The notes under the pieces are model-generated. The model did not search any database. It worked only from the letters and a program-made list of their open reading frames with translations, and was not told where the DNA came from. The position numbers were made by a program, and so were the translations under genes. Below are positions 38,737-64,000 of a stretch of DNA of 64,000 nucleotides, in pieces. The DNA is from Paragordius varius (taxonomy: Eukaryota > Animalia > Nematomorpha): NCBI GenBank assembly GCA_964247055.1, contig OZ176059.1, positions 1,860,001 through 1,924,000 of the forward strand, given 5' to 3'. Every line of letters begins with the position of its first letter. Within the stretch, counting starts at the first letter, position 1.

Positions 38737-41700
38737 CCATTTACAATTCAAACTCACCCTTAAACAATTGATATTCTAACCTTAAACAGTTCAAACTCAC
38801 CCTTAAAAAATTTAAATTCACTCTAAAATAAATTATGAGTTTTTTAGAATCAAAAATTACCTAAATCTTTTTATATTTTTTAAAAATGCATTTTCGTTTA
38901 AAATTAATATAATACTGAAAAAATGACAAACTATGTCATAAGAATATATTTCATATTAATAATGTGAGTTATAGCTGTCCGAAAATACATAATTTATTTT
39001 TAAGGTGAATTTTTGTTTAAGGGTGAAAGTGAACTGTAAATGGAATATATATATAAATTGCCATAAATGAATTTTTGTACTATATTGAAATCAATCATTA
39101 ATATATTTTATCTTTGCACTGTACATACATAAAAAAGATATTAGTCTAAATATATACATTTGCCGTATTTTTGCCTTACAATTTTCAATAAAAAAAATTA
39201 TATATTTACTTTTAAAGCATTTTTCCTTCTTTCGTTACAATATATATTTCTCCTAAATAAAATTAAAAAGTTAAATTAAACTAAAAAATTGAATAAAACT
39301 TAAAAACTAAAAAGTTAAAAAAATCTAAAACTCTAAAATAAAACACAAACTAAAAACCTTTCGGTTCACACCCAAGTTGTATAGAGTGGTGATGTTGATG
39401 TTCTTGTTTTTGGAAATTCTCTAAAACCTTAGATTTAGTTTCAGAGTTCAAATTTAATTCTTTGGTAAAATTCGATTCTGTCTTTGTGGAATTATCATTA
39501 TGATTATTGTTTAATTTGGAGGTAGTTATGTCCGTATTTTGCCCAAAATTTTCGTGAAAAAGCACGGAAACAGTTAAATCAGCTTCAATACCCCCTTGAG
39601 CATTAAGGGCACACGTATAAAATGTATTTTTAGTTGATAAAGTCTTAGGGATAGTTTTATTAGAATTATTCTTCGATAATGTAAAGTTTTGAAAGTTGTC
39701 CCTACTATATGTTGTGGTGGGTATACGGGTACAAAATAACCAATCAACCAATTGTGATACCTTATCATAACATTCTTTGGTCTATAGAAAGTAAAAATTT
39801 AGAAATATGCAGACAGATAAAAATTAAAAGAATTACAAAAAATTTTTTTTGTTCTCTACAATCGTAATTAAACTTTAATGATCATAAACTATATAAAATT
39901 CAAAATATATATATATATAATTAAGTGTGATGTATTACCATTTTACATCTCTAACCCAAAATTTTGCAATTTAAAACAACGAGTTATACTATATTTAAAA
40001 TTCAAATTCACCCTTAAACACTTTAAATTCACCCTTGAACAATTCAAATTCATCCTTGAACAATCCAAATTACCCTTCATTTCAAATTCACCCTTGAACA
40101 AATCAAATTCACTCTTTAACATTTCAAATTCACCCTTCATTTCAAATTCACCCTTGAAAAAATCAAATTCACTCTTTAACATTTCAAATTCACCCTAAAA
40201 CATTTCAAATTCACCCTTGAACAATTATTCATCCTTGAACAATCCAAATTACCCTTCATTTCAAATTCACCCTTGAAAAAATCAAATTCACTCTTTAACA
40301 TTTCAAATTCACCCTAAAACATTTCAAATTCACCCTTGAACAATTCAAATTCATCCTTGAACAATCCAAATTACCCTTCATTTCAAATTCACCCTTGAAA
40401 AAATCAAATTCACTCTTTAACATTTCAAATTCACCCTAAAACATTTCAAATTTACCCTTATTTAAATTCACCCTCAAAAAAATTTAGAGTATTTTAAGAT
40501 AAAAAAATTACCTATATTTTTATGTATATGTAAAAATAAGATTTTGTTTTACATTGAAAAATACTTTGTGGCGGCATAATAATGCCGCTATAAAGATATA
40601 TTTTATACAATGATGTTTTTATATTAGTTCGAAAACACATAATTAATTTTTAGGTAGAAATTATTCAAGGGTGAATTTGAACTGTAAAAGGTATATTTAA
40701 TAATCAAGATTTTAAATTTTTTTAAAAAAAGTTTCATTACTTGTTTTGTTGGGGCCAAATAAAATTTTCCAAAATATGACATATCGAAAATTGCGACACT
40801 TTGACGACAAGCTAGACATTCATCCCTTAACACGGTTGTATGATGTTTTGGAAACTCTGAGAGAAAAAAATATTTAAAGTTTAAATTAGACGTAAAAAAT
40901 ATAATTTTTACGTATATAAATGTCATCTATCAAAAAAACATGTTTGATATTAGAATCCAATCTTATAAAATCCCCTCCCCAAAATACATACGATAGTGGT
41001 AAAAAAGGTGTTTTGCTCAATATTCGCATTATAAAGTTTTTTAATAGTGAATTTTTATATATTACAAAAAATTAAATTTATATATTAATTTTTTTTTTCA
41101 ATAATTTGGAAAATTATTTTTTAAAGTTTTTTGAAAATAAATATATTAATTTTAATAACATGTTAAACCTTGATAAATTATAGCATAAGTCAATTTGTTA
41201 TCGCTATGTGCTTAAAATTTAGCTAATAATTTAGGGTGGGAATATATTATATGTATAATAATGAAAGCTTGGCAATATAAATAAATAAAATGTAGTAAAA
41301 ATTGAAATGATAATGGTAAAGACAAATGTTGAAAATATATAAATAAATTTTTTAAAAAGACAGCCTTGTTTATATATTCTATGATCTTGGATTAATAATC
41401 AGGCATCAGAGATATAAATATTGGAAACACATTTAATAATACATTTTACATTTGTAATTAAGTTAATAAGAAACAAAATTTGGAAAAGACATGGTTATCT
41501 TTTGGGAAAAAATATTGACTTTACTTGTAGTTTTTACTTTTTGTCTTAACATTTATTTCATTTTTACTGTACTGTAAATAATTAAAGGTCACTTTTCAAA
41601 AAAAAATTTTTTGTCATAAATAAAAAAAAGAAAAAAATAATGAATACCAAAAGTATAATCCATTTCAAGCGCTCGTGCATAAGGGTAATGTTTATGAACG

Positions 41701-44700
41701 GTACCTAAATCAGGGTAAGCCCCATAGTAATCGTAAGCGAGGGCTGGAAAATCTCCTTGTTGTAATGTAGATATGGTAGGTTCAATTGTGCCTTCAGTTA
41801 TATCTCTAAATTTATTCATGTATAATTATAAACCTTTTTAAAATATCAATTCTTTATTTGATTCAAAATATTGTATACATCGAATTCTACACTATTTGCC
41901 CATCTCTCAGAAAATATGAGCCACCATAGATGACTGACTTTGATGGAAAACATTCGTTAAGCCATTTTCCAACCTCTTTGAAATAATCAAAGTGCCGATA
42001 CGCCAGGGTGTGCCCCATTATCACGACTATGTGCTGGGTGAGGAAAGTTCAGCGGATGCAAAATAATTTCCCATAAAGTGATTTTAAGGTGTTTACACTA
42101 ATTTTGCTATGTGTGACAATGGCATGTAAATCACTTAAAGGGTTCTGGCCCATTGTGGCTTTTTTCCAGTTAATAAATGAACTAAATTGAGCATTTGTTG
42201 GCGAGAGTGTTATGTATGAACGGTTTGATCTGGCCTCAAAAGTTCATATTAAACAATACCGCCCTAGTCCTACCTTGTTCTTGTCAGAGCGATTTAGCCA
42301 TGATGTTAGGGGCCGGTTGACAGAGTGTCACTCTTTTTCGGGTTTGGATTTACTAAAGCCAAATCTCATCACCCGTCCCGATTCGATGTAAAAATAAATT
42401 CTTTTCCCGACGTCGAAGCAGAAATTCATAAATAACTTTTCGTTTTTCGATTTGTTCATAATACTGTTAGACCCATTTACCAAGTTTTATGATGTTTCCC
42501 ATTGCTCGCAAACATCCAATGATTGTTGTTGTAATACATGTAATGCTTCTGCCAATTAATGTTAAGTTGGAGTTGGGTCATCCAATAACTTTTGCACTTT
42601 AGAGTCTTTATAGTTGAGTGGCCTACCAGAGCCACGCTCTTTCACACATGAAATCACAACATTTCATATTTCGAAACCATGTTTCACACATGTGATAATA
42701 GATAAAGCATGTCACCATATGTTGCCAGCAAAAGATAACTTTCAGTAGCTTTCTTTTGGCAAATGTACTTATTCAGGCATACAATTCGACGTGATTACTG
42801 ATGATATAAGTTAGACACTAGTTTATGGCAAATTCAACTTGTGTGTATTCGTATTTTAATGTTAGATGAATAAAATGGGTCTGCATTAAACTAATCGTCT
42901 GCGTACTTTTTGACGTATTATAAATTAAACCGTTAATAACTTATGACTAAACTTGATATGTATATAATAATAAAAATGTATTAAGTGTAGAATTAAAAAA
43001 CTGTATAAGGGAAATAATTGGCGTAGATATAAAAAAACCGTAAATGTACATTTTTTGTTCTTACACACTATATCATTAGACTCAAAAAAATATAATGTTT
43101 TCATAAATTTTGATAAATACCAATTTGAAACATTTATAGCGTATAATATGGCTCCCCATTACAGAAATATATTTACAGTAAAGATTGAAATTTTACGGAA
43201 GGATAAAACGTGAAAACATAAAGACAAATATTTTTTATACAAAACTGTACTGTTTCAAACTTGATTCATATAAATGCATCTCATTGTATTACGATGCGTA
43301 TTTGTTAAAGATGGAGATTACGACAATCCTAAATATTGTACAATTGTAAATCAATAAATATGGGAAAAATAAAGCTTAAAAAGTATGAGGTTGTCTTTTA
43401 AAAAAATTTGTTTTTATATTTTTATCTGTGTACGTATAACTTCAAGTTTTACCGTATAAAAAATATTTTTTAAGTTTTTTACGTGTTTTGTCTTTTCTAT
43501 ATTTTAATTTTTGTAATATTTATCAAAAAATTTAAAACTTTATATTTTCATCCGCAGTATTATTGGTTTGAGTAGAAAATAGGGCGGTCTTATATTGAGG
43601 GGCTAAAAACCACCCCGGACGTTCCCAACCTCCTCGTTCTTGATAAATGCATCCACGGTGTAATAAAGCCTAGCACACAATATTAAAAATTTGTATTTTA
43701 AGTTGATTTTTTAAAATATTATTAACGCTTTTTTATTAATTGATTAATAGTTCTTATAAGTATATAATATTTGTAATTAACTTAATTTTGTGTTTTCAGT
43801 CAATCTTATTTTTTAATAATGAATCTTGTATATATTTAATTTTAAATAAATTTTTTTATTTTTTTCAATCTTTTCCTTTTTGATTCCTTTACAATAATAT
43901 ATGAAACATATATATATATATTGTTGTGTAAACTTTTTTTCCACAATAAAAAATATTAAAAAAAGTTTTTAAATTATATTAAAAAAATGCATTTTATTGG
44001 TGAATTGCCCAACTATAGTGTGTGTAAAATAAGCAACCATCAAAAGGCATACTGAAATTTTAAATTTAAAAATAAACCCAATAAAATTCAAAAAAACTAC
44101 CATATATTTTTGAGATTATCTGATATAAAAATTTGAATTTTTTTGCAAAATTTTTTGTAAAATACATCGCAACTATTTAATAATACAGCATTAATTTTAG
44201 TAGCAAAATAATAAATATATAAACCAAAAAACTAAGGTAACAAAAATGAAATGAACATTTCTGGTACAAAATTTATATTAGTGGAGCTATTAATACAGCT
44301 TTAATTTAACGAAAATAAACTTAAAAATGATAAAATTAACTAGTTTTTTTAACACACAAAAACTCAACTAAAAAATTAATCTAAAACCTCAAAAAAATTA
44401 AATCAAACTACTTTCTATATAAAGGGATATTGTCTAATGTTTAATTTTGAATTTATTTCCAAAATCATACAAAATTTATAAAGCTATAAATATAGCTTTA
44501 ATTTAACCAAAAATTATAAATGATAAAAAATTACTAAGTTTTTAACTTAAAAAAAATAAAATCTACTTTTATACAAGGGATATTGTTTAATATACAAATT
44601 TTATATTGGTTCTTAAAATCAATTAAAAAATTTTTTTTTGCTTCAAACATAAAAATATTAAAAAACTATAACTATAAAACCCCAAAATTAAAATTAGATC

Positions 44701-47700
44701 AAACTACTTGATATATAAGGGAGAATATCGGATTTATATTAGGAATGATACTTTTATTTGGCTTAAATTAAAAATAAGAAATAGTAATTTTTTTAATGCA
44801 AAAATCCAAAAAATCCACCTTACGAAGGGAGATTATCTATTAATATTCAAAATTTGTATTGGGAATGCTTTATAAAAACGTAGAACCTCACAAAAACCCC
44901 AAAAATAAACTACCTTATATAAGTGAAGCCTTATATTTTTGGATTTTATCAAAACAAATGTTAATTATAAATGCTATGTATCGATAATTTTTCTTTGAAA
45001 TTCTAAATCAATAAAAATGTTTTTTAGCTCTAAACATAAAAATATTAAAACTAAAACCTTTTAGAAAAAACCCAAAATACCTATATGTGAGGTTGCTTTA
45101 TATTTGGATTTTTCTATCACAAAATTTCACAAAAATATTATATAATCGCTATGTATCAATATAATTTATATTAGAAATTCTAAATATCAATAAAAATGAT
45201 ATTTTTAGCTCAAAACATAAAAACTTAAAAAAACTAAAACTAAAAAAACCCAAAAAACAAACTTACCTTATATAAGGGGGATTGTCTAATATTTCGACCC
45301 GCTAAAGGTTCATCATAGGGAAAAACGATACTATAATTTTTAGCGTAAGCTTCATGACTTCGTTCTAGGATCCATCGTCGATTATTGGCATAGCGTTTAT
45401 TGAAACGTCTAATTGATAAAAAAAAGTTTTTTAAAAAAAGTTTTAAATTAAAAAAATAATTTTTGAAATAAAAAAAATGTTTTATGATTAGGGGAATTTA
45501 TTAGAAAATCACAAATTTTTAAGCGGAAAACGCCATCTTTTATAGTAAAATACTAAATTTTATGATATTAAGTTTTATTATACAATAACCAATAAAGCAA
45601 TTGTAAAATGAAATAGAGTATACAATCAATTTAATATGTCTTTTCTTTATTTTTAAGAAAAACATAGATAGGTTATATTAAAAAATCAAGGGTTAAAAAC
45701 TATAATAAATTTTTTTTCCCTTTTACTTGTTATATATTTTTTACATTTATTTTCATTTACTGGGAATTTAATTAAAATTTGCCCGTGCGTTTACAAGTGT
45801 TTTACTGCCATTTGCTATTTAAGATAAAAATTTGCTGGAAATTAAGTGCGTAAATCTATACTAAAATTTAAGTCTTTTGATGGGATTAATGAATTACAAT
45901 AAAGTGATGAACTTTAAATATTTTTTATTTAAAAATAATTACGAATTCTCCAATATTTTTGACTAAAAAAATGGAATTTTTTTATTTTTTAAGCCCTTTT
46001 ACATATTTAAAAAGTAGTTGAATTATGTAAAATCTCACATAATTTTAACAGATAAGCTTGGTTATCTTTATATATCAGTTTAGCAAATTAGGATAAGTAA
46101 AAATTAAAAGACAAATATTGTTGTTAAGAAAATACCCATATTTTTTTGAACCTTGGTGTTTCCTGCTAAAATACTGTATAATAACAATTATGACATATAT
46201 AACTCATTGTAAAAGTTAACAATTTATCATCAGCTCGATTCCTTATTTTGCAAACGCAAAAAACGATGTGTTTCATGAACTAAATAAAATCTAGATTAAT
46301 GACATTATTAAACACAACCAATATTTACAATAAATTTAAGTTTTTATTCGACAAAAATTAAATTGTTGGACTTGGGAACTCATAAAGATATTATGACAAT
46401 ATTATAGGCACCCCCTCAATACCAATTCTTTCCTTAGATATTTGTCGAAAGAATATAAAGAATATAAAGTTCCCGTAATATACCATTTACAATTCTAATT
46501 CACTCACCCTTGAACAATTCAATTTCACCCGCCTTGAACAATTCAAATTCCCCCCTAAAAACAAATTATGTATTTTCGGGCAGCTAATATAACTCATCAT
46601 TAATAAGAAATATATTCCATATGGCATAAATTAATATTTTTTCAGTGTTATGTTAATTTTAAATAAAATTTTATTGGTGAATTCAAAATTTTTCAAGGGT
46701 GAATTTGAACTGTAAATGGTATATCAAGCATGTATGTAACTTTTGCACGCCATACCACCCTCGGGCCAAATGGTTAAAGGCAAAAAGGGTTATTCAAAAC
46801 CCCCTTGAAAATGCAATATTATTCTAAAGTAGCACAGATCTAGAACGCCAGTTAAACCAGGTATACTGTGGGCTTATAGGTCAGCCCATTACAATGGTAA
46901 AAATTAGACACGTGCAACACGATTATGCCTAAAACGAAATTTACCGACAGAAGGAAAATCAAAGGGGATTATATATTGATTTTAACTCACAGACAGTGTA
47001 CGTGATTTCGTTCCAGGTGACAAAGTACAGTAAGGATTGAAATTTTAAGGATAAAACTTGAAAATATGTAGACAAATATTTTTTACAAAAAGACAACCAT
47101 ACTTTTTAATCTTGTTTTTTTATATATATATAACTTATTGTTTTAAAATAAAAAGAATAATATAGCTATGTCAATTGGTAACACAATCAATTATATATTT
47201 TACAATTGTAATAAAATGTTTTTTATAACATAATTAAGGTTGAAAAAAGAATGGTTGTCTTTTGAAAAAAAAATTTGTCTTTATATTTTTACATTTCGTC
47301 CGTAAAATAAATTTCAATTTTTACTGTATTTATAATGAGAATGACTTAGAAGCCGGTTGGCAAGAAGGGAAAATAATAGGGCGGACTGGATTATTGTCAT
47401 ACAATATAAAAGATAGATGACGGTTTTACAAAAACATACTGATTAATTAATAGTTCGAAAAGAAAGGTCCGTATGAACTTAGGCTCGCCCGACCAGAAAG
47501 AATTGGAACCGGAACAACAGAAATTCACCCTTGAACAATTTAAATTCACCCTTAAACGATTAAAATTCACCCTTAAACAATTCAAATTCATCCTTGAACA
47601 AATCAAATTCACCCTTAAATTATGTGTGTTTTTTAAGATTAAAAATTACCTATATTTTTATATATTTGATAAAAAATAAAATTTTGCTTTAAATTAAAAA

Positions 47701-49571
47701 AAAATACTGAAAGGTAATAATAAATTATGCGCCATAAAATTATATTTAATAATATAGAGTAATATTAGTTTGAAAACACATAATTTATTTTTAGAGCGTT
47801 GAATTTGATTTGTTTAAGGGTGAATTTGAATTGTTCAAGGGTGAATTTGCACTGTAAATGGTATATTACAATTTAATTCATTTTACTAAAAAAATATAAT
47901 ATTGGTGCTGTTCTCAATTATTTGGATGGACAAAATAAGTGTTGAAAGTTATAAAATCAATCATAATTCTACGGAATATATTAAATATATACAAAGATAT
48001 TTTAGGATAATAATGAGAATGTTAAATTCATCTTTCTTGCCCAATCGGGTATTAATAATATTTCTAAAATGGCAACAATTCTTTTACCCCCTTAACATTG
48101 AAATTAACATTTCTTGGGAAGAAATTTATATGAAGCTGGAGTGAAAATATTTCAACCAGCCAAAAATACTTTTCTAGTCCCCGATAAGATTTCCTTAGAT
48201 CGGAACGAGTATCTGGTGAAGGATTCTTGGAATTTCGGATATGACTTAAAAGTTTAGCAACCGCGTATATCAGTTCAAAGGTAACATCGACGAGCTAATA
48301 CGAGATGTATTCATATGTGGTTTAAAGGAAAAACAACTAGAGGCAGAATTACTTAGAAGGTTAACACGAGGGCATTAAACAATGATAGAGTAGTGTGGGC
48401 TTAAATAAAGTTTTACATTTGGCTTTAGCGCATATATGAAAATTCAAATTCTCGCCTGGAATCAAACTCAGTGAGAGCGATAAGGTAATAAAAATGATGA
48501 AAGCTATAATAAATGAAATCTATAATGACAGATAATAATAATGAAATATATCTGGTTAGACCCAAATCTAGCGTAAAACCATGTTTCAAATGTAGTCGCA
48601 TATGATATTATCAATATTATTATTTTTCTATTGCTCCGATTCCAATGCTTTCTGGTCGGGCGAGCTTAAGTTAATCTGGACTTTCTTTTCGCCCTCTTAA
48701 TTGATTAGTATGTTTTCGTTAGACCCTACCTCTAACATTGATATTATATGACAATAATCCACAGTCCGTTCTGCTACTTTTCCTTCTCACCTGGAACGAA
48801 ATCACGTATATACCATTTACAGTTCAAATTCACCCTTGAAAAATTTTGAATTCACCAATAAAATTTTATTTAAAATTAACATAACACTAAAAAAATATTA
48901 ATTTATGCCATATGGAATATATTTCTTATTAATGATGAGTTATATTAGCTGCCCGAAAATAGATATTTTATTTCTAGGGTAAATTTGAAATGTTCAAGGG
49001 TAAAATTGAACAGTTCAAGGGTGATTAATTACGTTTTAGAAATATTCGTGTCGCAGGTGTCTCATTTATACCATTGTCATGTGCTGACCTATAAGCCCAC
49101 AGTATACCTGGTTTAACCGGCGTTCTGAATCTGTGCTACTTCACAGAATTACATATATATATATATATATAATAGTGCATTTTCAAGGGTTTAAAATAAC
49201 CCTTTTTGCACTAAACCAATTGGCCGAGAGTAGTATGGCGCGCACAAGTTACATGCTTAATATTAGAGGAACTTAATACTATACTCTATTCTTGAAAAAT
49301 CACCGGACTTATAATACGACGCCATTATCAGTTACAATCATCTCTGGGGTTTCATATCGTTCGTACAAACCACACAACTTTCTAAAACTTTTAAAATACT
49401 GATCGAGTTTACTGATTGTTTTAAGCTGTGTCACTTCCACCCAATAAAATTATAAAGACAAATATATGTATTGCAAAAAGAGAGCCATACTTTTTTGAAC
49501 ATAGATTTATTGTATACCATTTACAATTCAAATTCACCCTCAAATAAATTATATAAGATTAAAAACTACCA

Positions 49572-49610
<39 letters not shown>

Positions 49611-52600
49611 TACAGTGATCTATAAGTAGGACCCAGTAGAGTTTATCTACGGGTGCTATATCGAGAGAGTCGGACTTACTTCAATGTTGAACACCGTAAC
49701 TTTTGACAACTTGAACATCTTTGGACCCATTTTTCGATATTTCTATTTAAGGCCAAAACACACCAGTCTTATCTAACGCTTTCATGGACCGGATACCAGG
49801 TGTGACATTTATGAAGATACAGTAAAAATTGAAATTATACGGGCAAATCGTTAAAATATAAAGACAAATATTTTTTTCTAAAAGACAATCATATACTTTT
49901 TTGAACCTTAGTTTTTCTCAGATAAAATAAAAATATTAAATTATACCTGGAAAATATAAAATTGATTGTGTTACCAAATTAGACAACTATATATTTCATT
50001 CTTCTTTCGAATTTAGAAAAATAAGCTATAATTACAAAAAGATAAGATTTACAAAGTATGGTTGGTTGTCTTATAGAAAAAAATATTTGTCTTTATATTT
50101 TTACGTGTTTTGTCCGTATAATTTCAATTCTTCCTGTAAGTTAGAATATCAACCCTCATGCTTTGGGGAACAATAGGACAGTCACCTAGATTAGATATAT
50201 AAAGCAGTATGACTTTTCAATATCATTTCTCAATGGTTTATAGGACTGTACCCCGGAATAATACCAATCATTGGTCTTTCGTGCTGCCTTAATTTGTTTA
50301 CACATCTCATGGCTTATAGTTCCCTTTGTCCTTGTTTAAGATTAACTTCGGACACCATAGCAAACCTAGCTACTGCGCTATATCCTCGTCATTGTCACAC
50401 TCTTAAGTTAGTTCAATTTGTAGTCTTGATAGTGAATCTGTTAGATTTTCGGTTATCGAGTAGAATATTAGGTTGGAGTCGAAAATAAATGTTTTTGTGA
50501 TCCATCCGAGCAATTTACTATTGTTTAGCTCACCTAATATACGTTGATCGAATACTTTAATGAGAGGTTTATGGTTTGCTCTGATATGGAATTTTCTACC
50601 ATTTTTACTACTTTCTATATGATCATTCTTATTTATCGTTCTGACAGAGTTCGATTCCAAGCGAGAATTTTCATATATGCGCTAAAGCCAAATTTAGAAC
50701 TTTATTTAAGCCCGGTGTAACATTGCCTAATGCCCTCGCGGGTAGGTACTTGCTAAGTAATTCTGTCTCTAGCTATTTTTCCTTCAAACCACATATGAAC
50801 ACATCCCGTATTAGCTCGTCGATGTAACCTTTAAACTAGTATGCGCGGCAACTAAACTTTTAAATCTTACTAAGAACTCCAAGAATCCTTCCCCAGATAG
50901 TCGTTACGATGTAAAGAAATCAAATCGGGGGCTAGTAAAATATTTAGGGTTGGTTGAACTATTTTCACCCCATTTTTTTCCGTTTAGTATCTTTATAATT
51001 TAAATTTTAAACATTCTGATAGAAAAAAAGAAAAAAAACGAAAGAAGGGGGGTTATAACTATACATACTAAACTATACACCTAACATCCAAATGTGATAT
51101 ATCAAGCGTAGTTGAACCACGGGCAATTAACTGTGCCAATTGTTGAGCACATCCTCCGCTAAGCATAATACCGCTACTATTGAAACCCGAACCGTGGAAA
51201 TAACCCGCGACATTTATATCCGCTCCAATCAACGGTTTATGATCCGGTGTAAAAGATTCTACATATCGTAAACAAAAAAATAGATAAAGTCAAAATTATA
51301 CCATAAGTGTGTGTCAACCATACTTTTTAAACCATATTTTGCTATAGAAACTATCGTTTTGTGTTACGAAATATGGAATTGAAATTAAATCAGGGAACAC
51401 TTTCAATTATATAATCAACAATTGTAATTAACTCATATATGAAACAAAGAATCAAAAAGTATGGTTGTCTCAATAGTAAATATATGTGTCTTTTCGTTTC
51501 AACATTTTATCTTTTAATTTTAATCGTACGAAAAAAACGAGCAATAAATTTCCATCTTTATATAATTTACGAACATGTGAAAACTTTAAATTTATTATAT
51601 ACCATATCCACAAACAGTTGATTTTATGCCCGTATGTTTTAGGGCTGGCATAAGCTCCAAACTGGCCCGTAAATTAGGTTCAAACACGGTCCAATCCAAC
51701 TCAAACAGGTGAAAAGGTTGTTGCGAAAGAGTATCAGCTGATTTTTCCAGGAAATCATCAGCTGATTTTTCGGAAGAATCCTTTGTTGTTGAAATTTCAA
51801 TTTTTTTCTCATCAATGCTAAAGTTATTTTTTTGTGCAAATAAAATTCCATTCGTTTGTACAGCTATGGGGTTTTGTTCATAACCACCAAAAGCTAGTAC
51901 TTGACGGCCTTGAAGTTTAATATATACGCTCCGGTCATGGTCTCTAACATTGGGGACTGGTTTATCTAGGGGTGTAATTTTTGCGGAGTTACCATTTTCT
52001 AAAAACATACACACACAAATATAGAAATAGAGATTTTTAAATGTGATTGGATGATAGTTAAAACTTATTTATATAGCTCTACTAAATTGGCTAAGAAAAT
52101 ATTGAGCAATAAAAAACATGTGTATATTATTTGACAATTTTAGCGTCCTATGGACATAGACTCACAAATTTTTAAAATGATAAGATGATGGATATAATTA
52201 ATTATAATAAAAATTGATGATTGATGAATATAAATTTCGCAAAAAAAACCTTCTTCAAGGTTAATGAAACTCAGTGTGTAAGGTTTAAATTTTTAGTTAT
52301 ACAAAAATGTTAGTTTTAAAAAATGAAAAAAAATGTACTTTTTGCCCATGTATTTCTAATATATAGAATTATTACCTATAAGTCACCCTTGACCGATCCA
52401 AATAAACATCTCGAATTTACACTCGATATTTTAAATTCACTCTTGAACATATCATATTTACTCTAAATAAATTACGTGTTTTCAACCGAAATTACCTATA
52501 TTTCTAATAGTATAAAAGAAGCGTTGCTTAAAATTTATATAATAAAGAAAAAAATGATAAACTATGACATAAAGTAATAATTTTGATAATGAGTTAGAAT

Positions 52601-55600
52601 TGCCCAAAAACATATATTCGTTATTTGGGTTAATTTAAAAAGTTCAAAGGGTGAATTTGATTTAAATAGGTATACCATTTACAATTCAAATTCACCCTTA
52701 AACAATTCAAATTCACCCTTAAACAATTCAAATTCACCCTTAAACAATTCAACTTAACCCTCAAATAAAAATTAAAAATTATCTCTATTTTAATATATTT
52801 TAAAATATATATTTTGTTTTAAATTAAATTAATACAAAAAATAATAAACTATGCCATAAAGATAAATTTCATATTAATAATGAGCTATATTATTTCAAAA
52901 ACACATAATTTTTTAGAATAAATTTGAATGTTTAAGGGTGATTATAAATTGTTCAAGGGTGTTGTTTGAATGGCATATTGAAACACGTCTAAAAACATTC
53001 AAAACTTCATTCTATTTACAATCCTATTACCTTATTTAAAAATTAAAAATAACATATTTAAAAGGCATTCATACGCTTTGAAATTTCATAAAACAAACTA
53101 TTTAAACAAAGTAACTAACTAGGAAAATGGCGTCCAAAAGCGTAAGGTTGAAACTTTGGGAGTAAGTTGAGTCCGCCCGGTTCAAAGATTGGTTCACTGA
53201 CAACGTAGCTGTGTAGGAACGCGGTTTGTGGCACGGTGATCACGTGATCCCCACGTGAACTACACGTGTTTGCCAAGTCAGGTGCCCAAACGCCACATGC
53301 ATTTACCAGCGCATCACATGTGACATCATGTGATTGCTTAGCAGTAGCACCATCATCCATAAGCAGACGAACACCCTTAATACGTGACGAGGTATGCGTC
53401 ATCACGTGTTGTTGTTCATCGTTTGGAGCGGTTAAAATTGATTTAACAGATGTATTTTCAAATACCTATAAGGTGTGTTTTAAATGCTATTTTTAATCCT
53501 TTTTTTTAATTTTTAGATTTAAGTTTAGTAAATACAATAACCAGTAATAGGACATAGCTGTATTTTAAACGGATAAAATGGTATTTAATTCATAAGTATT
53601 TTTACATGTTAAGGATCTAAAGCTTTTAAAAATGCTTTCAAAAGTTCATAATTGGTTATTTTTTATAAAAAAAATATTTCTCTACCTGAGCACCGCGGGT
53701 TTTAGCCCACCCCACAAGAGCGTTACAGTAGGTGTTAGGGTCAACACCCCCATCCCCAGGGCTGTAAAGTGCCCCAAAAACTTGGGACGGGTCAATCAAA
53801 CAATGGACGTCGGAGAGTTCGCATGGCCGTAACATGTAGGATTGAACATCAAAAAATTTACCAAGCTAGAGATAAGATATATTTTGATGGAAAAATGTAA
53901 TAATTTAAAGACAAATATTTTTTTATAAAATGACAGTCCTAATTTTTTAAACTTGATTCCTTTGAATTTATTTGACCCGTGTCAAACTGCAATTACAATT
54001 GTGAAATTTATATAGGATAGATTAAGTTTTAAAAAGTATAGTTAGTAGTCTTTTGAACAAATAATTTGGCTTTGTATTTTACGTTATATCTGTATTATTT
54101 GAAGTTATACCTGTGTATATTCTACCCATAAAAAAATTAGACAATTAAATCGTATTAATGCGTGACAATTTTTAATGCTAGCACCATCATTAGACTAATG
54201 GAGGTTTGTCGCATCTTTTCACATATATTTTAAACCCTAATATTGCATTTATATCAAAGTAGCTTAAAAAGTTTAAAAGATATTTGAAAAATGACATATA
54301 AATGTAAAAATTTTAAGTTACATTCGTTCGCCATTTAAAAAAAAATATAGAAAGGCGGCGTGAGATGAGAATTTACAATTTTATATTTTTTAAAAAAATA
54401 AAATTTTTGGTATAATGCGCCTCAAACGCTAAAGAACGCATTTTTTACAATCGGCTTAATATCTTACATACTTTTTAAATATTTAAATTTTAAATCGCTC
54501 TGGGATACTAATCTGCCCAAAGGGTGTTGGGGTGTTAAACAAATTTAACTCTGTAATAGAAAAAAATGGGAATAAGTTCCTTTTTTATACTAAAAAAGTA
54601 TTATAATTATTACTAACGCAATACAAACGCAATTTTCGGTATAAACATTGCCATAAAATGAAAAACGGCTTATTTGGTGACATTAAATAATAAATATATT
54701 ACAGTAATGAGAAATTTTTGGTGATTATCATTAAATGGTTACAATAAGGGCATATATTCCACATGTGCATTATTATGTATCATTTTAGATATTTAACATT
54801 CCGATTCAAATTGGGGTACACAAATACCGCAGACTATATTTATTAGGTTAATATTTTTAAAAAGCTACTGAAAGAAACAATCCCATTTACATTTATGCTT
54901 CTATCCTAATAAAAATTATATAGGCGTATCTAAATAAAATTCAGTTTCGAAATAAAAATTTCATATCATAATACTTCAATACCATTTTTATTTACAACAT
55001 TTTGCACAATATCATGTATTTTTAATTTTAAAGGTAAAATTAAGCTAATTTTATATTTAAATCACTTCTAACATAGATAGAAAGAGAAAACATGGTTAAT
55101 TTTGTATATTTAGATTTAGTTAATGCATATATGTCATCGTTTGGTTGCCTTAAAATAAGTAAAGTATTTTTAAATAATTTTTTTCATATTTCGGTTCATT
55201 AATGTTTTATAAGTGCAAACATTTGCTATGGTTTCAATTCCTTCCATATTTTTTAAAGTATTTAATGAGGATCCAACGACCCCAATTTGAATCGAAGGAC
55301 CAAAAATGAATGTGTTCTATTCTAATGTTAATTAAACAGTGCATTTTTATTATCCATTATTTCAGAAATGTATAATATATCTTATAAAAATAAAAAATCT
55401 CATACATGTGGTGGCAACAACAACAGACGACAAATAAATTAAACCAATCATTTTTAGTTATTTACAGTCATGTATCCTTTATAAAATTTATTCTTTTCAT
55501 TAAATTTGTATAAATATTTGGCAAAGAATGGATAAAACAAGAGCTCTGTGGTAATTTTTATACTTTATTGATGAATATGATATTGTTAATACCATATAGC

Positions 55601-57026
55601 TCTTGTTTTTTCCATTATTTACCAAATAGTTATACCCATTTAGTGAAAAAAAATAAATTTATGATAAAATAAAGGATACATGACTGTAATATACGAAACT
55701 AGCCAATAAGAGCAGTCGTTCGTTATTGTATAAAAGTGATAGGTTAACCATAGTACGCACATGCGCACATGAAACAAGTAGTATGGTCTCGCCTAACATT
55801 GGCTAAAATTATAATTCGCAGTATCTAAAATAAGTTTATAACGTTTGTATAAAACTGTAGTAAAAAATCCATATTTCACTCAACATGTCATAACAGGAAA
55901 ATTTAGTTTAGACCAAAAAAAATTTTAAATTAGATTTTTAAACAAGGTCAAGTCAGGCTGTCACACAAACAAAAATACAAGACAGAAATTAAGCATTAAA
56001 CAATCAAACACCAAATATAAAAATATGGGAAAAAAATTCAAAAGCATTCAAATCTACTTCTTATGTATGGAAAAAAACAAATGGTTATAAAATTTAACAT
56101 TTTTCCCCTATTATTCATTCAATTTTGGATTAACTTTCTTTCATAGTATACGCTACTGTATTATATAGTAATGACCTTTTATAAACATAAAATGTTATAA
56201 CATTATGTGAAATAAAATTTCAAACATATGTTAAATTATCATAAATAATTTATATCAAAAAAATAAATATAATTTAATGGCATTCCGCATAAATTAAGAT
56301 AGAAAAGTTATGATAAATCCTTAAGTAACTTTAAAATATTATAATATATTAAATGATTGATAATTATAAAATAATTTATAAATTACTAAAAAAATGTAAT
56401 TCTATAAAAAAATAACTGTTTGTAAGCGTTGGTATTCTTTAAGGCGTTCAGCATTAGAGGCGATAAATACGCCTCCATTTTCTTCCCAGCCAGATGGTTG
56501 ACCAGTTTCTTTCTCCAAATTTTTCATGAGCCAACGCGTATAATTAAGTAATTGTATCTCGGTATCATTTGGTCTAAGTCTCCAAACTAAACCTATAGAA
56601 TTGTATTTAAGCAAAGTTTTAAAAATAAGGTTTGATAAAATGAAACAAAAAAGATTAAAAACCTCCAGTATGCCAGGTTGTACCGCTTGTAAGTTGGGCC
56701 CGTTCAATAAGGGCTACATTTGTAACATTATCTTTAACTAAATGATATAACATGCTACAACCAAATACACCTCCGCCAACGATAATAACGTCATAATGTT
56801 TTTTCAATTGATGATCTGTCGAGGCGTTCGAACAAAGATTTCGAATAATTTGGAAATGTAAGTTACTAGCATATTTATTTACAAGGAATGATTTATGTTT
56901 TTTATTTATAGAAATGCTATAGTTATTTGAATGTTTAAATGTTAAAAAATTATTAAATTTTAAACAAGCGTGGATACTAGACATATGTGAATGCACCAAT
57001 GGAGGTGTGCAATATGAAAAAATCAT
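25775..57026 (-). CDS. SARDH: Mitochondrial sarcosine dehydrogenase, complete, about 1,210 aa (1,196 aa from the second ATG at 56984)
   Basis: Exons (minus): 57026-56663, 56592-56417, 53865-53686, 53465-53120, 51998-51603, 51258-51081, 45408-45267, 43669-43539, 41805-41648, 40856-40741, 39781-39358, 37553-37400, 36206-36029, 35655-35550, 28268-28043, 27168-27023, 25986-25775 (3633 nt, open frame). Motifs: FAD-binding [21 protein letters not shown] (covalent-flavin His), [63 protein letters not shown] and C-terminal [15 protein letters not shown]. The N-terminus is basic and acid-poor, like a mitochondrial presequence. Confidence 0.95.
28900..32520 (-). mobile_element. Decayed Ty3/gypsy LTR retrotransposon (PBS-gag-protease-RT-RNase H remnants) in SARDH intron 14
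   Basis: PBS-like TGGTGTCGTGA at 32514-32504. Gag-like [25 protein letters not shown] and a zinc-knuckle remnant [14 protein letters not shown]-like VEKEIDRL...[11 protein letters not shown] and [12 protein letters not shown]. RNase H-like [16 protein letters not shown]. Many stops and frameshifts; boundaries approximate; interrupted by a family A MITE. Confidence 0.8.
33010..33990 (+). mobile_element. Internally deleted gypsy-type element (U5-PBS-gag start ... pol end-PPT-LTR start)
   Basis: PBS TGGTGCCGTGA (33051-33061) overlaps the ATG of [10 protein letters not shown]. The pol-like end [10 protein letters not shown] is followed by the purine tract AAGAAGAAAAGAAA and then TGTAAG at 33973. 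Confidence 0.58.
34006..35384. mobile_element. Foldback-type element, about 1.38 kb, with about 500-bp inverted arms and 21-bp subrepeats
   Basis: It starts TATACCATTTTTCATGCAAAAACATC and ends GATGTTTTTGCATGAAAAATGGTATA. The arms (about 34006-34510 and 34955-35384) contain TTTTTTCAAGCAAACGCAACA-type tandem units. Confidence 0.85.
41885..42860 (-). pseudogene. Decayed mariner (DD34D-type) transposase in SARDH intron 8
   Basis: Minus-strand fragments in the correct order: HTH-like TCETWFR...[20 protein letters not shown] (first catalytic Asp), [20 protein letters not shown] (degenerate YSPDL) and [19 protein letters not shown]. Multiple stops and frameshifts; no intact TIR pair was recognised. 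Confidence 0.83.
44390..45300 (-). repeat. Degenerate tandem array of the SARDH exon 7 3' end plus its 5' splice site
   Basis: ATTAGACAATCCCCCTTATATAAG|GTAAGT (true donor 45266) is echoed with GT at 45080, 44913, 44818, 44707, 44566 and 44411. Confidence 0.72.
46727..48605 (+). mobile_element. Gypsy fragments (integrase, then gag) in SARDH intron 6
   Basis: KPGILWAYR and [10 protein letters not shown] are integrase core/C-terminal motifs. [36 protein letters not shown] is gag-like, and KPCFKCSR is a zinc-knuckle remnant. The region is interrupted by family A and B MITEs. Confidence 0.7.
48630..50980 (-). mobile_element. Decayed gypsy element (gag - RNase H - integrase) in SARDH intron 6
   Basis: The gag segment 50980-50660 is the inverted homologue of about 48130-48470. 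RNase [18 protein letters not shown]...[10 protein letters not shown]. Integrase zinc finger [10 protein letters not shown]...FWP...[13 protein letters not shown]. Integrase C-terminus is homologous to 46727-47520. Confidence 0.8.
55463..55688. mobile_element. MITE family C, second copy
   Basis: TACAGTCATGTATCCTTTAT...ATAAAGGATACATGACTGTA termini; homologous to 21208-21431. Confidence 0.85.
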
Positions 57027-59435
57027 AAACAGAAATTTTTATTTAAATATGTAAAATGCTGGCTTTGTGACATTTTTGGGAAAATCAAGTCGGCCCATCC
57101 TTGTAAGGAAATTTATATATATATATATATTCAAAAGGCGCCTACGGTTACTAGGTCATTTTCTTGTAAAATATAAGTTTTTGCTATACAAAAGTCCAAA
57201 ATTATTAATTACTATTGGACAAACAATAGGAATCGTATGCTTATTCGAGTTTAAAAGCGGGCGTTTTGAACGTTTTTAATGGCCGAGGGTGACAGAGTGA
57301 TCTTTTTTGAACAAGCTCCACACCACATGGAAAAATGGAAATTTATAATGAACATTGGCATTAAAATAAATTATTAAAAAAGCGTAGAATTTAACTTTAA
57401 TAATAGGTTTTAATAATTTAAAATTCAGAGAAGTAAGTTAACATATTAATCAGTCCATTCTTGACCCTATAAAATAGGTTTTTTATTTAAAGATATTTAG
57501 GCAATTTTCGGAAAGTGCTATTTTTACTATCCTGATTAATTTAAGAAAGAAGTATTCACACTTGGTGGAAATGTTTACCATCACTGAATGTGATAAAAAA
57601 GCGTTTTTATAACATAAAATGTATTTTAACCATTTATCGTGACTCAAAATTGTATGAAAAACGCTTCAAAAAAAATTTGCTGAAAAATTAGATTTTTAAA
57701 ATATTTTTAGTCCATATCAAAATTTAACATATATTTATTATCACACAATTCCGACATTTTTGCGTTTATTTTAACAGAACTAGCATTTTAGCACAGCAAA
57801 AAAATGGTACTTTCGCAGTCTACATCTGCAAATATTTTTTGAAAATATTGCTTTTAGGTTTAAATATATTAGGAAAATTATTACCAAAGTCTCTAGGTTG
57901 CACTAAAAAATAAAAAATGTGCGTAATTTTGTCATTTTTTTTATATGGAGCACTTATCACAAAAGTGTAAATAATTTTCTGAAATCTTTCAAAAGGGTCA
58001 AAACCTAAAGCAATGATAATCTTGAAATTTTCGTATCATAATATATTTCATCAGGTTATTTTTTATACACCCCGTTTCTAACGCGGTGTAAGGAAATGGC
58101 AATTGCTCACGTTTTGTTAAATAATTTTTTTTGGTGAAAGCTGAATGCTATTTTAAATATATCACTAATATCATAAAATACATATAAAAAGCAAAACAAT
58201 ATTTTTATTAATTTTAATATTTAGATGTCAGCGAATGTACCAAATTTTGCCCTTTCAAAATGAGCTAATTCTTTAAAACTAATTCAAAAGCACCGAGATC
58301 TATAAAATTTTTTCATATACGCTGATTATGACATTATCATTGGAAATAAATGAAACCTGCCCAAAAATTGCATGCTATTTTGAAGCATGATTGTAACTGT
58401 ATAAAAGCGCTTTAAGAATTCTAAAAACATTTGTAATTATAATAAACTTCTATCGAATCAGAATTGATATTTAAAATATTCCTTTGTCCTAAAATGTTAA
58501 GATAATTTGTCTTCTTTATAAATTATTCCCTCAAATTTATAAGCAAACGTGACTTTTAAATTCTGATTGAAAAAATGCTTAGCCTTATTAAATTTTATAA
58601 AATAAGAATTTTATTAACCAACTTGAAAATACCATAAAACTTGCTTCGCTAATCTCATAAATTTTTTATCAAAATACCCACTTCTTTGAAATATGGAAAT
58701 TTAACATAAGAACTAGCCCATTTAAAGAAAACATTATTACTTTCGGAAATGACACCTAATTATTTTATAAAATTATGTTTTTTATATGTAATTTATGATA
58801 TATCTCTGATATTGGAATGAACTATTTTTTACCAAAAAAATTATTTAACAAAGTCTCTAATGCCATTTTTTGTGATGGAGTAGTCACACAAAAAGTGTCA
58901 ATCTCAAAAGGGATAAAACCAAAAGCACTATGATAATCTTGATACATTTTATTAATATATATATATATATATATATATCAGAATATCTTTGTGAACATGC
59001 TCTATTTGAAAGTGTTAATTCCTTTAGTTATAAATGTCGGAAAGAGGAAGCGCCATATAATCCTTATGTTCATGTCCCCTCTCTCTCTGAAAATGCTGTT
59101 TTATATAAATATAAATTTTAAAGTGATTTTCCAGGAGGCTAGGCTCTTTTGATTTTAAAAATATTTTTGCACTCTATCAGACGTGCCCTGTTCTTGAGCC
59201 TATATAGAAATATTTATATTTAAAGTATTCCAATTTAATACGCAGCATATATGTGAATTGGCTTTTGGTAGCCAAAAGAATCAAACTAAAAATTTAGAAA
59301 AGGTTCCCATAGTTACGATGTACACTTATGTAATTGTACGTTTAATTAATTCTGCATCTCGAAGGTTAACAGAACAATTTTATAAATTAGCTCCTGCTCA
59401 TACCCTTAGAAGTGATATGTACTACATTTCAACCA

Positions 59436-59722
59436 GGTGTCCAACACAAATGGCTTTGCGGGACGCATTATATCATAAATTCTAGCGGTCCGCATTCGCC
59501 ATATACATGGGCATATATAATTATTTTATTGGATTATATAAGACTGTAAAATGCAAACATGTTATAACAATTTTTCTAGTTCGATACCAATTGTACAGAC
59601 TTTTTCTAAGAAATTATTTATAAAATATAAATTTTATTGAGATTTTATAAGCATGTTTTGCCAAATTATAAATTTCCAAATTTTTTCGCGGGCAGCTCAA
59701 AGGGCCCCATGTTGTACCCCTG
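59436..59722 (+). mobile_element. hAT-like MITE
   Basis: CAGGTGTCCAACACAAATGGCTTTGCGGG...GGGCCCCATGTTGTACCCCTG. The flanking 8-mers ATTTCAAC and ACCTAAAC may be a decayed TSD. A further partial left end lies at about 59929-60000. Confidence 0.55.
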
Positions 59723-61405
59723 ACCTAAACTAATATTTAGAATCATATTTTAAGTTGATTGATAAACAACTCCTGCCAATGCCCGATTCCGAAAAATTAA
59801 CATTTAAATTATATTGAATCTTATTCAAACAATATTTTCTAATACTGTTCTAACAGTAAAAATTAAAATTATAAGACAAAACGTAAAAATTTAAGAGGCA
59901 AATTTTTTAAAAAGCAACACACTGTATCACCAGTGCCCAAAAATGAATGGCTTCGTGGGCCGCATTTTTAACTAAAAAAATCAGGCGGGGCACTTTCCAA
60001 AATATGTGTGCTGTAAAAAAATTATGAAAAATATAATTACCAATTATTTGATTTGCTACTTCATACAAAATTTAGTAAAAAAACATTTCAGAAAACTTGT
60101 TTGAATAATATTAATTTTACGTGTATTTTGTAAACTGCATTTTATAAATTATATATTTGGTATTTTTTGAAATTTTTATACGGGTTGCAAAATATTTTGG
60201 AATGACGGATATTGACCTTTGATTATCTTTTGGGTGGCAAAAGACCAAATGTAAATTGCTAACTTTAATATATTTTAAAAGTTAATTATATGGTTTATGT
60301 GGGAAAATCAAAGTTTCATAAAGTATGATTTTGTTTATTTAAAAAATTATCTTTTATCTTTTACGTTTGTCTCTAAATTTTAATTTTTATTGCATTTTGT
60401 TTTATATTTATCCTGGGGATAGAGCGGTTTTTAAGGCTCAGCTCAAAGTATTAAATCTAAAAATCTCAAATTTAATTAAAAATCTAAACCCCCTAATGGC
60501 TCTAATTTTTTTTGTTTTAATCTTTATTTTTGAATTCTTCTATCCTTACTATAGTATGACCATTGTCCAATTAGAGTGTGCACATTGATGCTGGCCTATT
60601 TTGGCATTCTTGTTGGCCAATTGGCAACACAGTAGTGTATGGGTAAAAACGACAGAATATTATTGAAAATAAACGATTTTTTCCTTTTTTATGATTAATT
60701 ATGGACAAAATTTGTTTTTTAACACACGCTACTTACTGCATTTGGCGAACAATAAAATCTAAATAGACCAGTATGTGCGCATTTTTTTAACCAAATTTTT
60801 ATAAGTTTGAATTACAGCGAGGCAGGAGTAAATGCTAGCCAATTATTAATAAAAATAAAAAAATAAATCTAATTAATTAAATCAACAAACTCATTGAATA
60901 AAAATCATGTTGTCATGGAATTTTTTAACAGTATGTCGAATGTATATTGTCATATAACTGTGAAACCAATAATGTACCATAAAACAATTAACAACAATAA
61001 TGAAACGATTCAATTGGGATAAAGTACGAAATATAAAGTACTTACTTTTAAATAAAATTACAGTAATAATTGAAATTATACAGACAGAACGTAAAAATAT
61101 AAAGACAAATATTTTTTCTAAAAGACGACCATCCTTTTTAATTCGGGTTTTTTTGAATATAAATCATTATTTTTTACTGCAAAGAATAATATAGAGTAGT
61201 AATTAATAACAGAATCAATTATGTATATTACGATTGTAATTAAATTATTTTTATAGGATAAATTGAGATTTAAAAAAAAGTATGGTAGGTTGTCTTTTGA
61301 AAAAAAATTTTGTCTTTATAATTTTACGTTTTGTCCATAGTATAATTTCAATTTTTACTGTAAATAGTTTAATGACATAATATATTTTTTATGATGATAA
61401 TCAAA

Positions 61406-64000
61406 TCACGGTTGCACAAAACGACCATAGTAAAGGATTGGACCACTCTTATGATAAACCATGTAACTGAAGGGTCGATTCAACACCAACTTTTCAATCG
61501 TTTCAGCTGGAATAATTTTTTTGCCATCGGTTGGTTTTGCAGCAGCTGCCGCTTTAGCCAAATCTCGACCATTGAAATAATCATCGCCGTAATAATCATC
61601 GTCATAACCCTCTCCTTCTTCATAATCCGTTATCTCCTCATATAAAGTAGGATCGTGAGATTCTGTATCTCCAACCAATTTTTCCATATCTTGGATATTG
61701 TTCATCATGTCAGCAAAATTGAAGCTAAATGAAAATGGTTTACTAGCGTTATTTTGAGTCGTCTCAGTTTGAGCTGCTTGTCTTGATTGAACTCCATCAC
61801 CAGTTTTAACGGTTGGTTTTTCAACCATTTCTTCCTCCGGCATATTAATGCCAAAAGCATTTAGCGTAAATGGAACGGTATGTTGAAAAACATCGAGCGT
61901 TAAGTTGAGTTTAGTATCATCCATGATACGGTTTAAGCGTCTAGAGAGAGATAGAGAGTACAGCAAATAAAAATAATAATTTATGGCATAAGGAAAAATT
62001 TTTTTTGACAAAATTAGTTCAAAATTTTAATGATTATATATTGATTCAATAAAATTAGACCATACTTTTCATCAAAATGGGTATTTATCAATTCAATAAT
62101 ATATCTTTATATAAAATAAAAAACTTTCTACCTCGTTTTTAGCAAAAAAATTTAACTACTTACGAAATAATAAAGGCAAAACATAAAAAGTGAAAATCAA
62201 ATGCTTTTTTAATAAAGAGACCATATTTTAACCCTTAATTTTGTATATATATTTTTGGTATGATGGTAATCTTTTAGGTTATGTAAAAAATTAAAAGATA
62301 AAAAAAATGTTAGCCATTTTACGTTTTATCCTTATAAGTTCATTAAATAGTTTTGCTTAAATGTAATTTTTTGAACAAATATTAAATATACATATCTCTT
62401 GTATGATTTAGGTAGAAAACGGATATACTTTTTATGACATGCTAATCTTTCACCAAATAAATCCATTACGTTTGTATGATGTATCGTTTGTTGATGTTTA
62501 ATTTTAGGTATAAGAAGTTGCATTTTTTTCGTGGTTGGTTTAAGGCCATCAATACCCATTCCAATTTCTCTCCAACTGAAAGCTTTATCAAAAGCGGAGA
62601 TGCTTGAATTCACATAAGGTACCATAAGTAACAAGACAAAATCCTTACCTTTCAAATCTAGTTTAATTAGTTTAGCTTGAAGGCTAGCCGAATCGAATGT
62701 CGTAAGGTGCGTAGGTTCCATTAACTCCATATATGGTATAATGGTGATACCCCCATCTCCGGCATGAAATATGTTAAGTTTTTGGGCTCTATAAAATTGA
62801 AAGTTTGTTTATGCGTATGCAAGAGTCTATGGTTAACAGGGATTAAGACTTTATTTTGCTACTTATTAAAGGTATTTTAAGTGCTATCGATACAAACACG
62901 GATTATAGGGTGTTATCGAATGACTTTATGGTTTTAGTAAAAACGTTTAAAACCATTTATACAAAATAAGCTATGAAATTAGGGAAACAATCATTTTTTG
63001 GCAATTGTTTAGCAAAAATATACTAAATATTATGCGCCCCTAAATTTAAATAATACAAATAGCTACATTATATGTCATATTATTAACTTTTAATTATATT
63101 TTCAAAAAAATATATAAATAAACGAAGATTTACAGGTTTTATTAAATGTTTTTAATTATCGAATTTTAAAAAGTTTAAACTGCAAACAGCTATGATACTT
63201 TAAAAACACAGCTTAAACCTGCTTTGTATTAAGACTCCTTAAAATCTATATTTTAAGCATTTGCTAATTAAATTTGGGTATGGTTTTCTAAAAACAAGCA
63301 GCTTTATTTATTAATGTACCTTCTTCTTTCTCCCTACTAAATTCAATAGTCTACTAAAATGGTTTTAATCATTTCACACCCTTTTTATCAAAGCTTGAAG
63401 ACATGAAAAGAGTAGATACCCATAATATTGACATTTATCTGACCGCCTAGGTTTGACAATGATAACGGATAAACCATACAGTTTCGTATATCGAACTGCT
63501 GACATAATTTAAAAGTTTACCCTTTCGTATCGAATGGGACATCCCATGAACTTTGAAAATACAACGTATTAAACACTAGGACTGAGAAAGGTTTAATTTT
63601 TTTTCCGTCATGAATTACATTTAGCATGACACCGTTTGAATCTTTAGCTACGAGTCGGTTAACCCGTTTCACCGTTTCGGGAACGGTTGACCATTTGTTG
63701 GTTCGGATAATTTTAACATTGAAAGCATCTCTAACACTCTTTTTGTAGGCGGCTTTAAGGTGTGGAACAGTACTATTTACAACCACATACGTTGTTAGTA
63801 TCAACGAGCTATCCGGTAGTATATTTTGTGCGTCCCCCTTATTTTTAGCAACTACTGACCTTGCAATGGATGTGGTTAAATTTTGGTTAGTTCGTTTATA
63901 CATTGCCGTGTTTGAGGGATGGGCCACACCCGCTATCCCATTTAGGCATGTTGAGCCGAGTTGGATAGCACTCAGCCCAAGCGTTAAACCATGAGGGCTA
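61406..64000 (-). CDS. Divergent serpin family protein, 3' part (5' end outside the window), with a greatly extended reactive-centre loop
   Basis: Exons (minus): >64000-63521, 62788-62429, 61940-61406; phases 2/2 match, 457 aa visible. Serpin motifs: SPHGLTLGLSAIQLG (shutter), VKRVNRLVAKDSNG, FNTLYFQSSWDVPFD (breach), IKLDLKGKDFVLLLMVP, LLIPKIK and C-terminal LVLNRPFSYMVYHKSGPILYYGRFVQP*. Confidence 0.9.

Follow-up and report, generated by a model that had tools for sequence, protein, structure and literature searches.

The window analysed here, a stretch of 64,000 nucleotides from the nematomorph Paragordius varius (assembly GCA_964247055.1, contig OZ176059.1, positions 1,860,001 to 1,924,000), contains on its minus strand a serpin gene in which 120 uninterrupted codons separate strand 1C from the end of strand 5A. 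Our preferred explanation, which we regard as evenly poised when all of its parts are taken together, is that this is an intact, selectively constrained and lineage-specific serpin carrying 94 extra translated residues in its reactive loop, that these residues would be the relic of a duplicated module of the serpin itself, and that the product would be non-inhibitory. At the level of sequence, this amounts to a well-supported oddity of a gene model and not to a demonstrated mechanism.

The function of serpins relies on a short loop whose hinge directly follows strand 5A, and the length of this loop is among the most constrained features of the family. In this sense, a constrained natural gene with ~95 extra residues at the junction of strand 5A and hinge would indicate the degree of disruption that the fold can bear at its mechanical pivot. 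If the duplication is true, the gene would also exemplify how loop cassettes, once duplicated, can turn into new disordered appendages instead of alternative exons. Furthermore, if the acidic, Tyr-rich arm within the loop is sulfated and secreted, heparin cofactor II (HCII) would be joined by a second, independent serpin with an acidic module of the exosite type.

Gene Model and Serpin Identity

The window has a guanine-plus-cytosine (GC) content of ~25% and contains spliced genes. Three exons of the serpin gene lie within it, the 5' end being situated beyond position 64000, and the 457 codons of this coding part already exceed the length of an ordinary serpin. The features of the gene are listed below; a slash marks a splice junction, and residue numbers are counted from Arg1 (61939-61937) of the last exon.

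63521-64000, minus strand: serpin exon a, helix B to strand 3A; Pfam Serpin profile positions 65-173, 31.8 bits; donor GG/GTAAAC, phase 2; 5' end off the window.
62789-63520, minus strand: intron 1, 732 nt, GTAAAC...TTTTATAG; GC 27%, without codon periodicity.
62429-62788, minus strand: serpin exon b, sheet B/C region to strand 6A and helix I; Pfam Serpin 178-283, 27.2 bits; acceptor TTTTATAG/A; donor AA/GTATAT, phase 2.
61941-62428, minus strand: intron 2, 488 nt, GTATAT...CTCTCTCTAG; GC 21%; indels in the second haplotype.
61406-61940, minus strand: last exon of 177 codons, followed by the stop (61406-61408); acceptor CTCTCTCTAG/A.
61850-61903, minus strand: strand 5A and canonical P15 glycine, LTLDVFQHTVPFTLNAFG, residues 13-30, placed by profile-position bookkeeping.
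61571-61852, minus strand: extra segment ("copy 1"), residues G30-N123, 94 amino acids, net charge -18, predicted disordered.
61574-61642, minus strand: acidic Tyr-rich run, YEEITDYEEGEGYDDDYYGDDYF, residues 100-122, with a 15-nt tandem micro-duplication at 61576-61605.
61535-61570, minus strand: displaced hinge-like stretch and putative start of "copy 2", GRDLAKAAAAAK, residues 124-135; HMMER puts its Ala run at Serpin profile position 324 onward.
61409-61534, minus strand: distal reactive loop, strands 1C, 4B and 5B, and C-terminus, PTDGKKIIPAETIEKLVLNRPF...GRFVQP; Pfam Serpin 324-370, 20.6 bits.

Membership of the serpin superfamily is indicated by two sequence criteria, a colinear profile match and a conserved C-terminal block. 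When the exons were compared with the Pfam Serpin profile (PF00079) one by one, the matches were colinear over three pieces (65-173, 178-283 and 324/325-370, with 31.8, 27.2 and 17.8-20.6 bits, respectively), of which the first two alone reach the 27-bit cutoff. The C-terminal block NRPFSYMVYHKSGPILYYGRFVQP (N-[KR]-P-F ... G-[KR]-x-x-x-P) aligns with the C-terminal peptides of PAI-1, SPI-1, ZPI and other serpins in PDB, and the top PDB match of exon b is the tick Serpin-8 (7pmu). By its scores, the gene is extremely divergent. Both introns are in phase 2 with good GT/AG junctions and agreeing phases; the four splice junctions are intact and all exons seen are open. The piece with strand 5A had no PDB match and no Pfam family by itself; its assignment draws on the bookkeeping of profile positions and on motif resemblance, the His of QHT within VFQHTVPFTLNAFG being the one that we take to be the conserved shutter His.

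Position and Coding Status of the Long Loop

In translation, the stretch 61406-61954 (minus strand), which contains the last exon, reads ...VFQHTVPFTLNAFG, then 120 stop-free codons from I to K (61849-61490), then LVLNRPFSYMVYHKSGPILYYGRFVQP and the stop. An earlier note on this DNA, made from its letters, had counted the same 120 uninterrupted codons between TLNAFG and LVLNRPF (61490-61849), and the translation bears this count out. TLNAFG, the end of strand 5A, directly precedes INMPEEE, and NGRDLAKAAAAAK sits 26-28 residues ahead of LVLN. Altogether, 123 residues separate the P15 Gly from the Asn of LVLNRPF; in alpha-1-antitrypsin, the spacing is 22 residues. Profile positions 284-323 have no HMMER match, and 39 residues separate the Gly of TLNAFG from the last match of exon b. 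Because this 39-residue gap fits the 40 unmatched profile positions, the TLNAFG Gly would be P15, and the ~99 extra residues would fall exactly at the junction of strand 5A and hinge. An assembly artefact is excluded by the contigs of two separate samples (X1 and X3), which span the loop without indels.

The loop segment has a GC content of 0.38, distributed over the three codon positions as 0.53/0.35/0.27, a pattern shared by exons a and b; in both introns and in the 3' flank, the values are 0.21-0.27 and flat across codon positions. Only 0.25% of random 120-codon windows of the same sequence are free of stops, and the open reading frame containing the loop is the longest of the entire 64-kb window. 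A second sample of the species provided contigs that cover 61440-61951 and differ by 8 substitutions and no gaps; all 8 fall inside the loop, four of them being synonymous and four conservative replacements (S>G, E>D, T>M, A>S). Between this sample and the window, several indels are found in the non-coding DNA on both sides (introns and 3' flank), and no frameshifting indel in the coding parts. Over the three exons, 15 synonymous and 9 non-synonymous differences were counted, which gives a ratio of non-synonymous to synonymous polymorphism (pN/pS) of ~0.17 and a binomial p = 2e-5 against neutrality. Purifying selection acts on the serpin gene; within it, the loop behaves as coding sequence under somewhat weaker constraint than the core. 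The second-sample haplotype also differs at 61400-61405, by a 1-nt deletion and a CT insertion right after the stop, and by two synonymous changes in the final codons; the stop is kept.

These data bear on the possibility that part of the segment is an exitron or an unrecognised intron, removed always or alternatively, so that the mature loop is near normal in length. In-frame GT...AG pairs with acceptable motifs do occur, and the donor hexamer GTAAAC at 61743 is that of the real intron 1. The best in-frame candidate, of 294 nt, runs from the donor CTG/GTGATG (61800) to the acceptor TTATTCCAG/C (61507); its removal would leave 25 residues from the P15 Gly to the Asn of LVLNRPF, which is near canonical, and none of the listed runs that match the locus is recorded as RNA. 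Nonetheless, with 41 in-frame GT..AG pairs in the stretch, chance motif matches are expected. At 36-38%, the GC content of the candidates exceeds that of the real introns (21-27%), and every one of them retains the non-inhibitory INMPEEE hinge. The strong codon periodicity of the segment, its frame open over 120 codons, the absence of indels between haplotypes and the excess of synonymous changes also speak against its removal, and we consider this explanation unlikely. The cryptic intron GTGATG...CGAG that the earlier note had named as a possible refutation is similarly unlikely: its GAG acceptor is disfavoured, its composition is exon-like and the frame stays open.

Hinge and Inhibitory Status

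The published consensus for inhibitory serpins comprises E at P17, E, K or R at P16, G at P15, T or S at P14, and A, G or S at P12-P9; serpins with a charged P14, or with Pro at P12 or at P10, no longer inhibit (PMC2689274). The canonical hinge position of the gene, A-F-G-I-N-M-P-E-E-E, departs from it in having no small residue at P12-P9, with Pro at P11 and Glu at both P10 and P9. The displaced stretch F-N-G-R-D-L-A-K-A-A departs at P17, at P14 (Arg, charged), at P12 (Leu) and at P10 (Lys), and in the alternative register, where the Ala run is read as P12-P8, the P15 Gly and the P17 Glu are lost. As for loop length, inhibitory serpins were expected to have ~20-28 residues, with 17 from the start of the hinge to P1, and the 123 residues counted here lie outside this range. 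Because neither hinge candidate conforms to the published consensus, the protein most likely lacks suicide protease trapping, i.e., it would be a non-inhibitory serpin. This agrees with the earlier note, which had read INMPEEE at the canonical hinge position and had judged the protein probably non-inhibitory, and had pointed out a hinge-like, Ala-rich stretch at roughly the normal distance from strand 1C; HMMER does align this stretch with the hinge positions of the profile, and the consensus extends the non-inhibitory verdict to it.

A different view is that the protein is still an inhibitor by means of the displaced hinge. The 94 residues would then bulge out where strand 5A turns into strand 4A, the Ala run would enter sheet A after cleavage near KK/II, and the acidic Tyr-rich run would act as an exosite accelerator as in HCII; alternatively, activity would be switched by trimming of the insert. 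The run of five Ala lies at approximately the right distance from strand 1C and is aligned to the hinge positions of the profile, and the sole replacement of the second haplotype in this stretch, Ala131 to Ser, leaves a side chain that is still small. An insertion at the turn between strands 5A and 4A would be topologically compatible with loop insertion, and HCII provides a precedent for an acidic serpin appendage that binds a protease exosite (PMC3601010). On the other hand, with the Gly as P15, the hinge would have Arg at P14, Leu at P12 and Lys at P10, and a charged P14 abolishes inhibition by the published rule (PMC2689274), whereas with the Ala run as P12-P8, Gly is missing at P15 and Glu at P17. 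Furthermore, under the branched-pathway mechanism, a flexible tether of 94 residues should slow the insertion of the hinge and favour the substrate pathway. Inhibition through the displaced hinge seems to us quite unlikely, and we retain the non-inhibitory reading.

Origin of the Extra Residues

When residues 30-123 were aligned end to end with residues 124-177 (global alignment), 16 of 53 aligned positions were identical, and the anchors G-x10-KPT, DG, [KR]PFS[FY], P-x-L and YYG were colinear. Compared with shuffled residues, the self-alignment has a z of ~4 (p 0.0003-0.002, three gap schemes); none of the 146 circular shifts and none of the reversed controls scored as high, and block shuffles gave p 0.001-0.02. 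At the DNA level, the KPT anchor is identical at 13 of 14 nucleotides, which was reproduced in 0 of 30 shuffles. From these alignments we incline, if only slightly, to the view that the extra piece is a decayed in-frame tandem duplicate of the hinge-to-C-terminus module (54 residues). In this scenario, the module would have been duplicated in tandem and in frame; the downstream copy would have kept the serpin consensus and would complete the fold, and the upstream copy would have decayed and then been enlarged by the acidic Tyr-rich run, made partly through micro-duplication.

No family was found in Pfam or PDB for the insert, including its N-terminal 61 residues, the near matches being compositional (the acidic Tyr stretch of emerin) or due to chance (proteasome). 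Searches of the 64-kb window with blastn and tblastn revealed no source of the insert elsewhere in it, and Tandem Repeats Finder reported no repeats. The earlier note had proposed a domain of ~94 residues inserted at the start of the loop. The extra residues are real and in-frame coding, as it had supposed; the part that we would revise is the inserted domain. A foreign inserted domain is disfavoured, since the segment has no relative in Pfam, PDB or the database searched and aligns colinearly with the hinge-to-C-terminus module of the serpin itself.

Loop Character and Proposed Role

With its net charge of -18, the extra segment is predicted to be disordered by its position relative to the charge-hydropathy boundary. 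Residues 100-122 include six Tyr, of which four to five have, as judged from sequence, the Asp/Glu-flanked context of sulfotyrosine modules of the HCII or hirudin type; if the protein is secreted, the loop would be a good substrate for tyrosine sulfation. AlphaFold2, applied to the last exon alone and without alignment, returned a pLDDT (predicted local distance difference test) of 38, which is uninformative. Broadly, the serpin fold would carry a floppy, strongly acidic loop of ~120 residues atop sheet A, translated within the protein, and this loop would more likely be presented as an exposed, protease-accessible and possibly tyrosine-sulfated binding or bait segment than as a suicide trap. 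A function as binding or bait segment is speculative, as are the effector peptide and the switch by removal of the insert that the earlier note had suggested.

The acidic run (61574-61642) includes LYEEI, and also GYDDDYYGDDYF, which phmmer paired with GYNDDYYEESYF of emerin. LYEEI matches YEEI, the classic core of ligands of Src-family SH2 domains. Both resemblances are probably coincidences of composition, and would be relevant if the protein is intracellular.

Contrary Evidence and Relatives

Several observations weigh against the preferred reading of a constrained, translated and non-inhibitory duplicate. Taken alone, the loop has four synonymous and four non-synonymous differences (pN/pS 0.24, p = 0.053), and its constraint is borderline. 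None of the listed sequencing runs matching the locus is recorded as RNA, all the contigs being DNA, and one presumed-RNA run (X6) gave no match. The long preservation of the five-Ala run in the displaced hinge may reflect a continuing role of loop insertion. With regard to the duplication, the local alignment of the two copies by itself is borderline (p 0.05-0.08), the boundaries of the duplicated units were set after inspection of the sequence, the YYG anchor overlaps the 15-nt micro-duplication, and copy 1 by itself had no serpin match in the Pfam and PDB searches. The N-terminus, with helix A and any signal peptide on which secretion, and hence tyrosine sulfation, would depend, lies off the window. 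Lastly, no orthologue or paralogue by which to judge conservation of the loop across species was retrieved in the searches made.

These searches were of different kinds. An exhaustive phmmer search of 1.84 billion protein representatives with the last exon gave only two matches, both to long proteins with internal repeats that add up to the score, so that neither is a true relative. Exact-match look-ups of three versions of the open reading frame gave no record. A word-index protein search with the last and first exons gave no match, the method being length-limited and its evidence weak. The feature search of the ESM Atlas returned clusters of serpin fragments only, the nearest of them mostly arthropod.

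The lack of relatives would also suit a silent or dying paralogue, that is, an unexpressed gene on its way to becoming a pseudogene, with the bloated loop as tolerated junk. This would fit the extreme divergence (just 18-32 bits per exon against Pfam Serpin), the absence of RNA runs matching the locus and the presence of a high-copy miniature inverted-repeat transposable element (MITE) 43 nt past the stop codon. Nonetheless, the exons seen are open and the four splice junctions intact, the pN/pS of ~0.17 (p = 2e-5) is that between two individuals, and the coding parts are free of frameshifting indels though the nearby non-coding DNA has them. A gene in decay appears very unlikely to us, and an intact, constrained serpin remains the reading that we prefer.

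Comparison with Known Serpins

Among non-inhibitory members of the superfamily, ovalbumin has Arg at P14. The gene described here resembles non-inhibitory proteins with a serpin fold, of the ovalbumin and Drosophila type, in that the core motifs are present and no run of small residues directly follows strand 5A, a charged P14 being a classic non-inhibitory signature (PMC2689274). In Drosophila, 12 of 29 serpins lack the hinge motif (PMC2770083). In contrast with this gene, with its ~120 residues and a second hinge-like stretch, the loops of non-inhibitory serpins are of normal length; the reactive loops annotated in UniProt have 20-28 residues (PMC13215094).

Alternative cassette exons for the reactive loop have been described in insects, such as exon 9 of Manduca serpin-1, Bombyx serpin-1 or exon 8 of Pteromalus PpSPI1 (PMC5691223). 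The unit that would be duplicated here is the same, comprising hinge, reactive loop and everything up to the C-terminus, and it would likewise lie in tandem. However, each insect cassette is an exon of its own that has a stop and is used to the exclusion of the others, whereas in this gene both copies lie in a single open reading frame and would be translated in series. No intron-like sequence is found between the two internal copies, and a tblastn search found no further cassette copies of the last exon, either in the 64-kb window or downstream, which sets the gene apart from alternative-cassette serpins.

Large insertions within the fold are also known. Spn100A has 294 extra residues between an N-terminal block of 44 and a C-terminal block of 235 amino acids of serpin homology (PMC2770083), and PpSPI4 has ~80 extra residues before strand 5A (PMC5691223). 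As in the present case, these genes indicate that serpins can hold 80-300 extra residues within the fold while staying conserved, but neither insertion falls between strand 5A and the hinge. We found no description in the literature of a serpin insertion at that point, inside the reactive loop.

The closest functional analogue of the acidic appendage is the N-terminal acidic extension of HCII, which binds exosite 1 of thrombin and has been called unique in the superfamily (PMC3601010). Both appendages are rich in Asp/Glu and Tyr; that of HCII is the N-terminal tail of an inhibitory serpin, whereas the one described here, known from sequence alone, lies inside the reactive loop of a serpin that is probably non-inhibitory. 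The boldest interpretation would be that two reactive-loop modules stand in series in one polypeptide, the upstream relic serving as an acidic exosite or bait arm of the sulfotyrosine type and the downstream Ala-rich hinge still inserting into sheet A. The capture or cleavage of a target protease would then be steered or switched by the 94-residue arm placed where strand 5A turns into strand 4A; no serpin has been described with such an architecture. We regard it as highly improbable.

Genomic Surroundings

A foldback, MITE-like element (61058-61363) is found 43 nt downstream of the serpin stop; its terminal inverted repeats are imperfect and ~73 nt long (61058-61130 and 61288-61363). The summed word-depth of contigs over this element reaches hundreds of thousands to millions, against ~180 in the single-copy flanks; because it is so far above the flanks, the element belongs to a family of very high copy number in the genome. 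An Rfam search over 58000-64000 gave no match.

One run labelled as a different organism (organism B, from another study) contributed low-depth contigs identical to the locus, with 0 differences over pieces of 100-205 nt (60800-64000, runs X5 and X1). This identity suggests the presence of the same species in the sample, or a labelling or cross-sample issue, and not a diverged relative. The next gene downstream (39350-57026, minus strand), on the same strand as the serpin and with a first-exon open reading frame at 56655-57026, resembles an FAD enzyme of the sarcosine/dimethylglycine dehydrogenase type.

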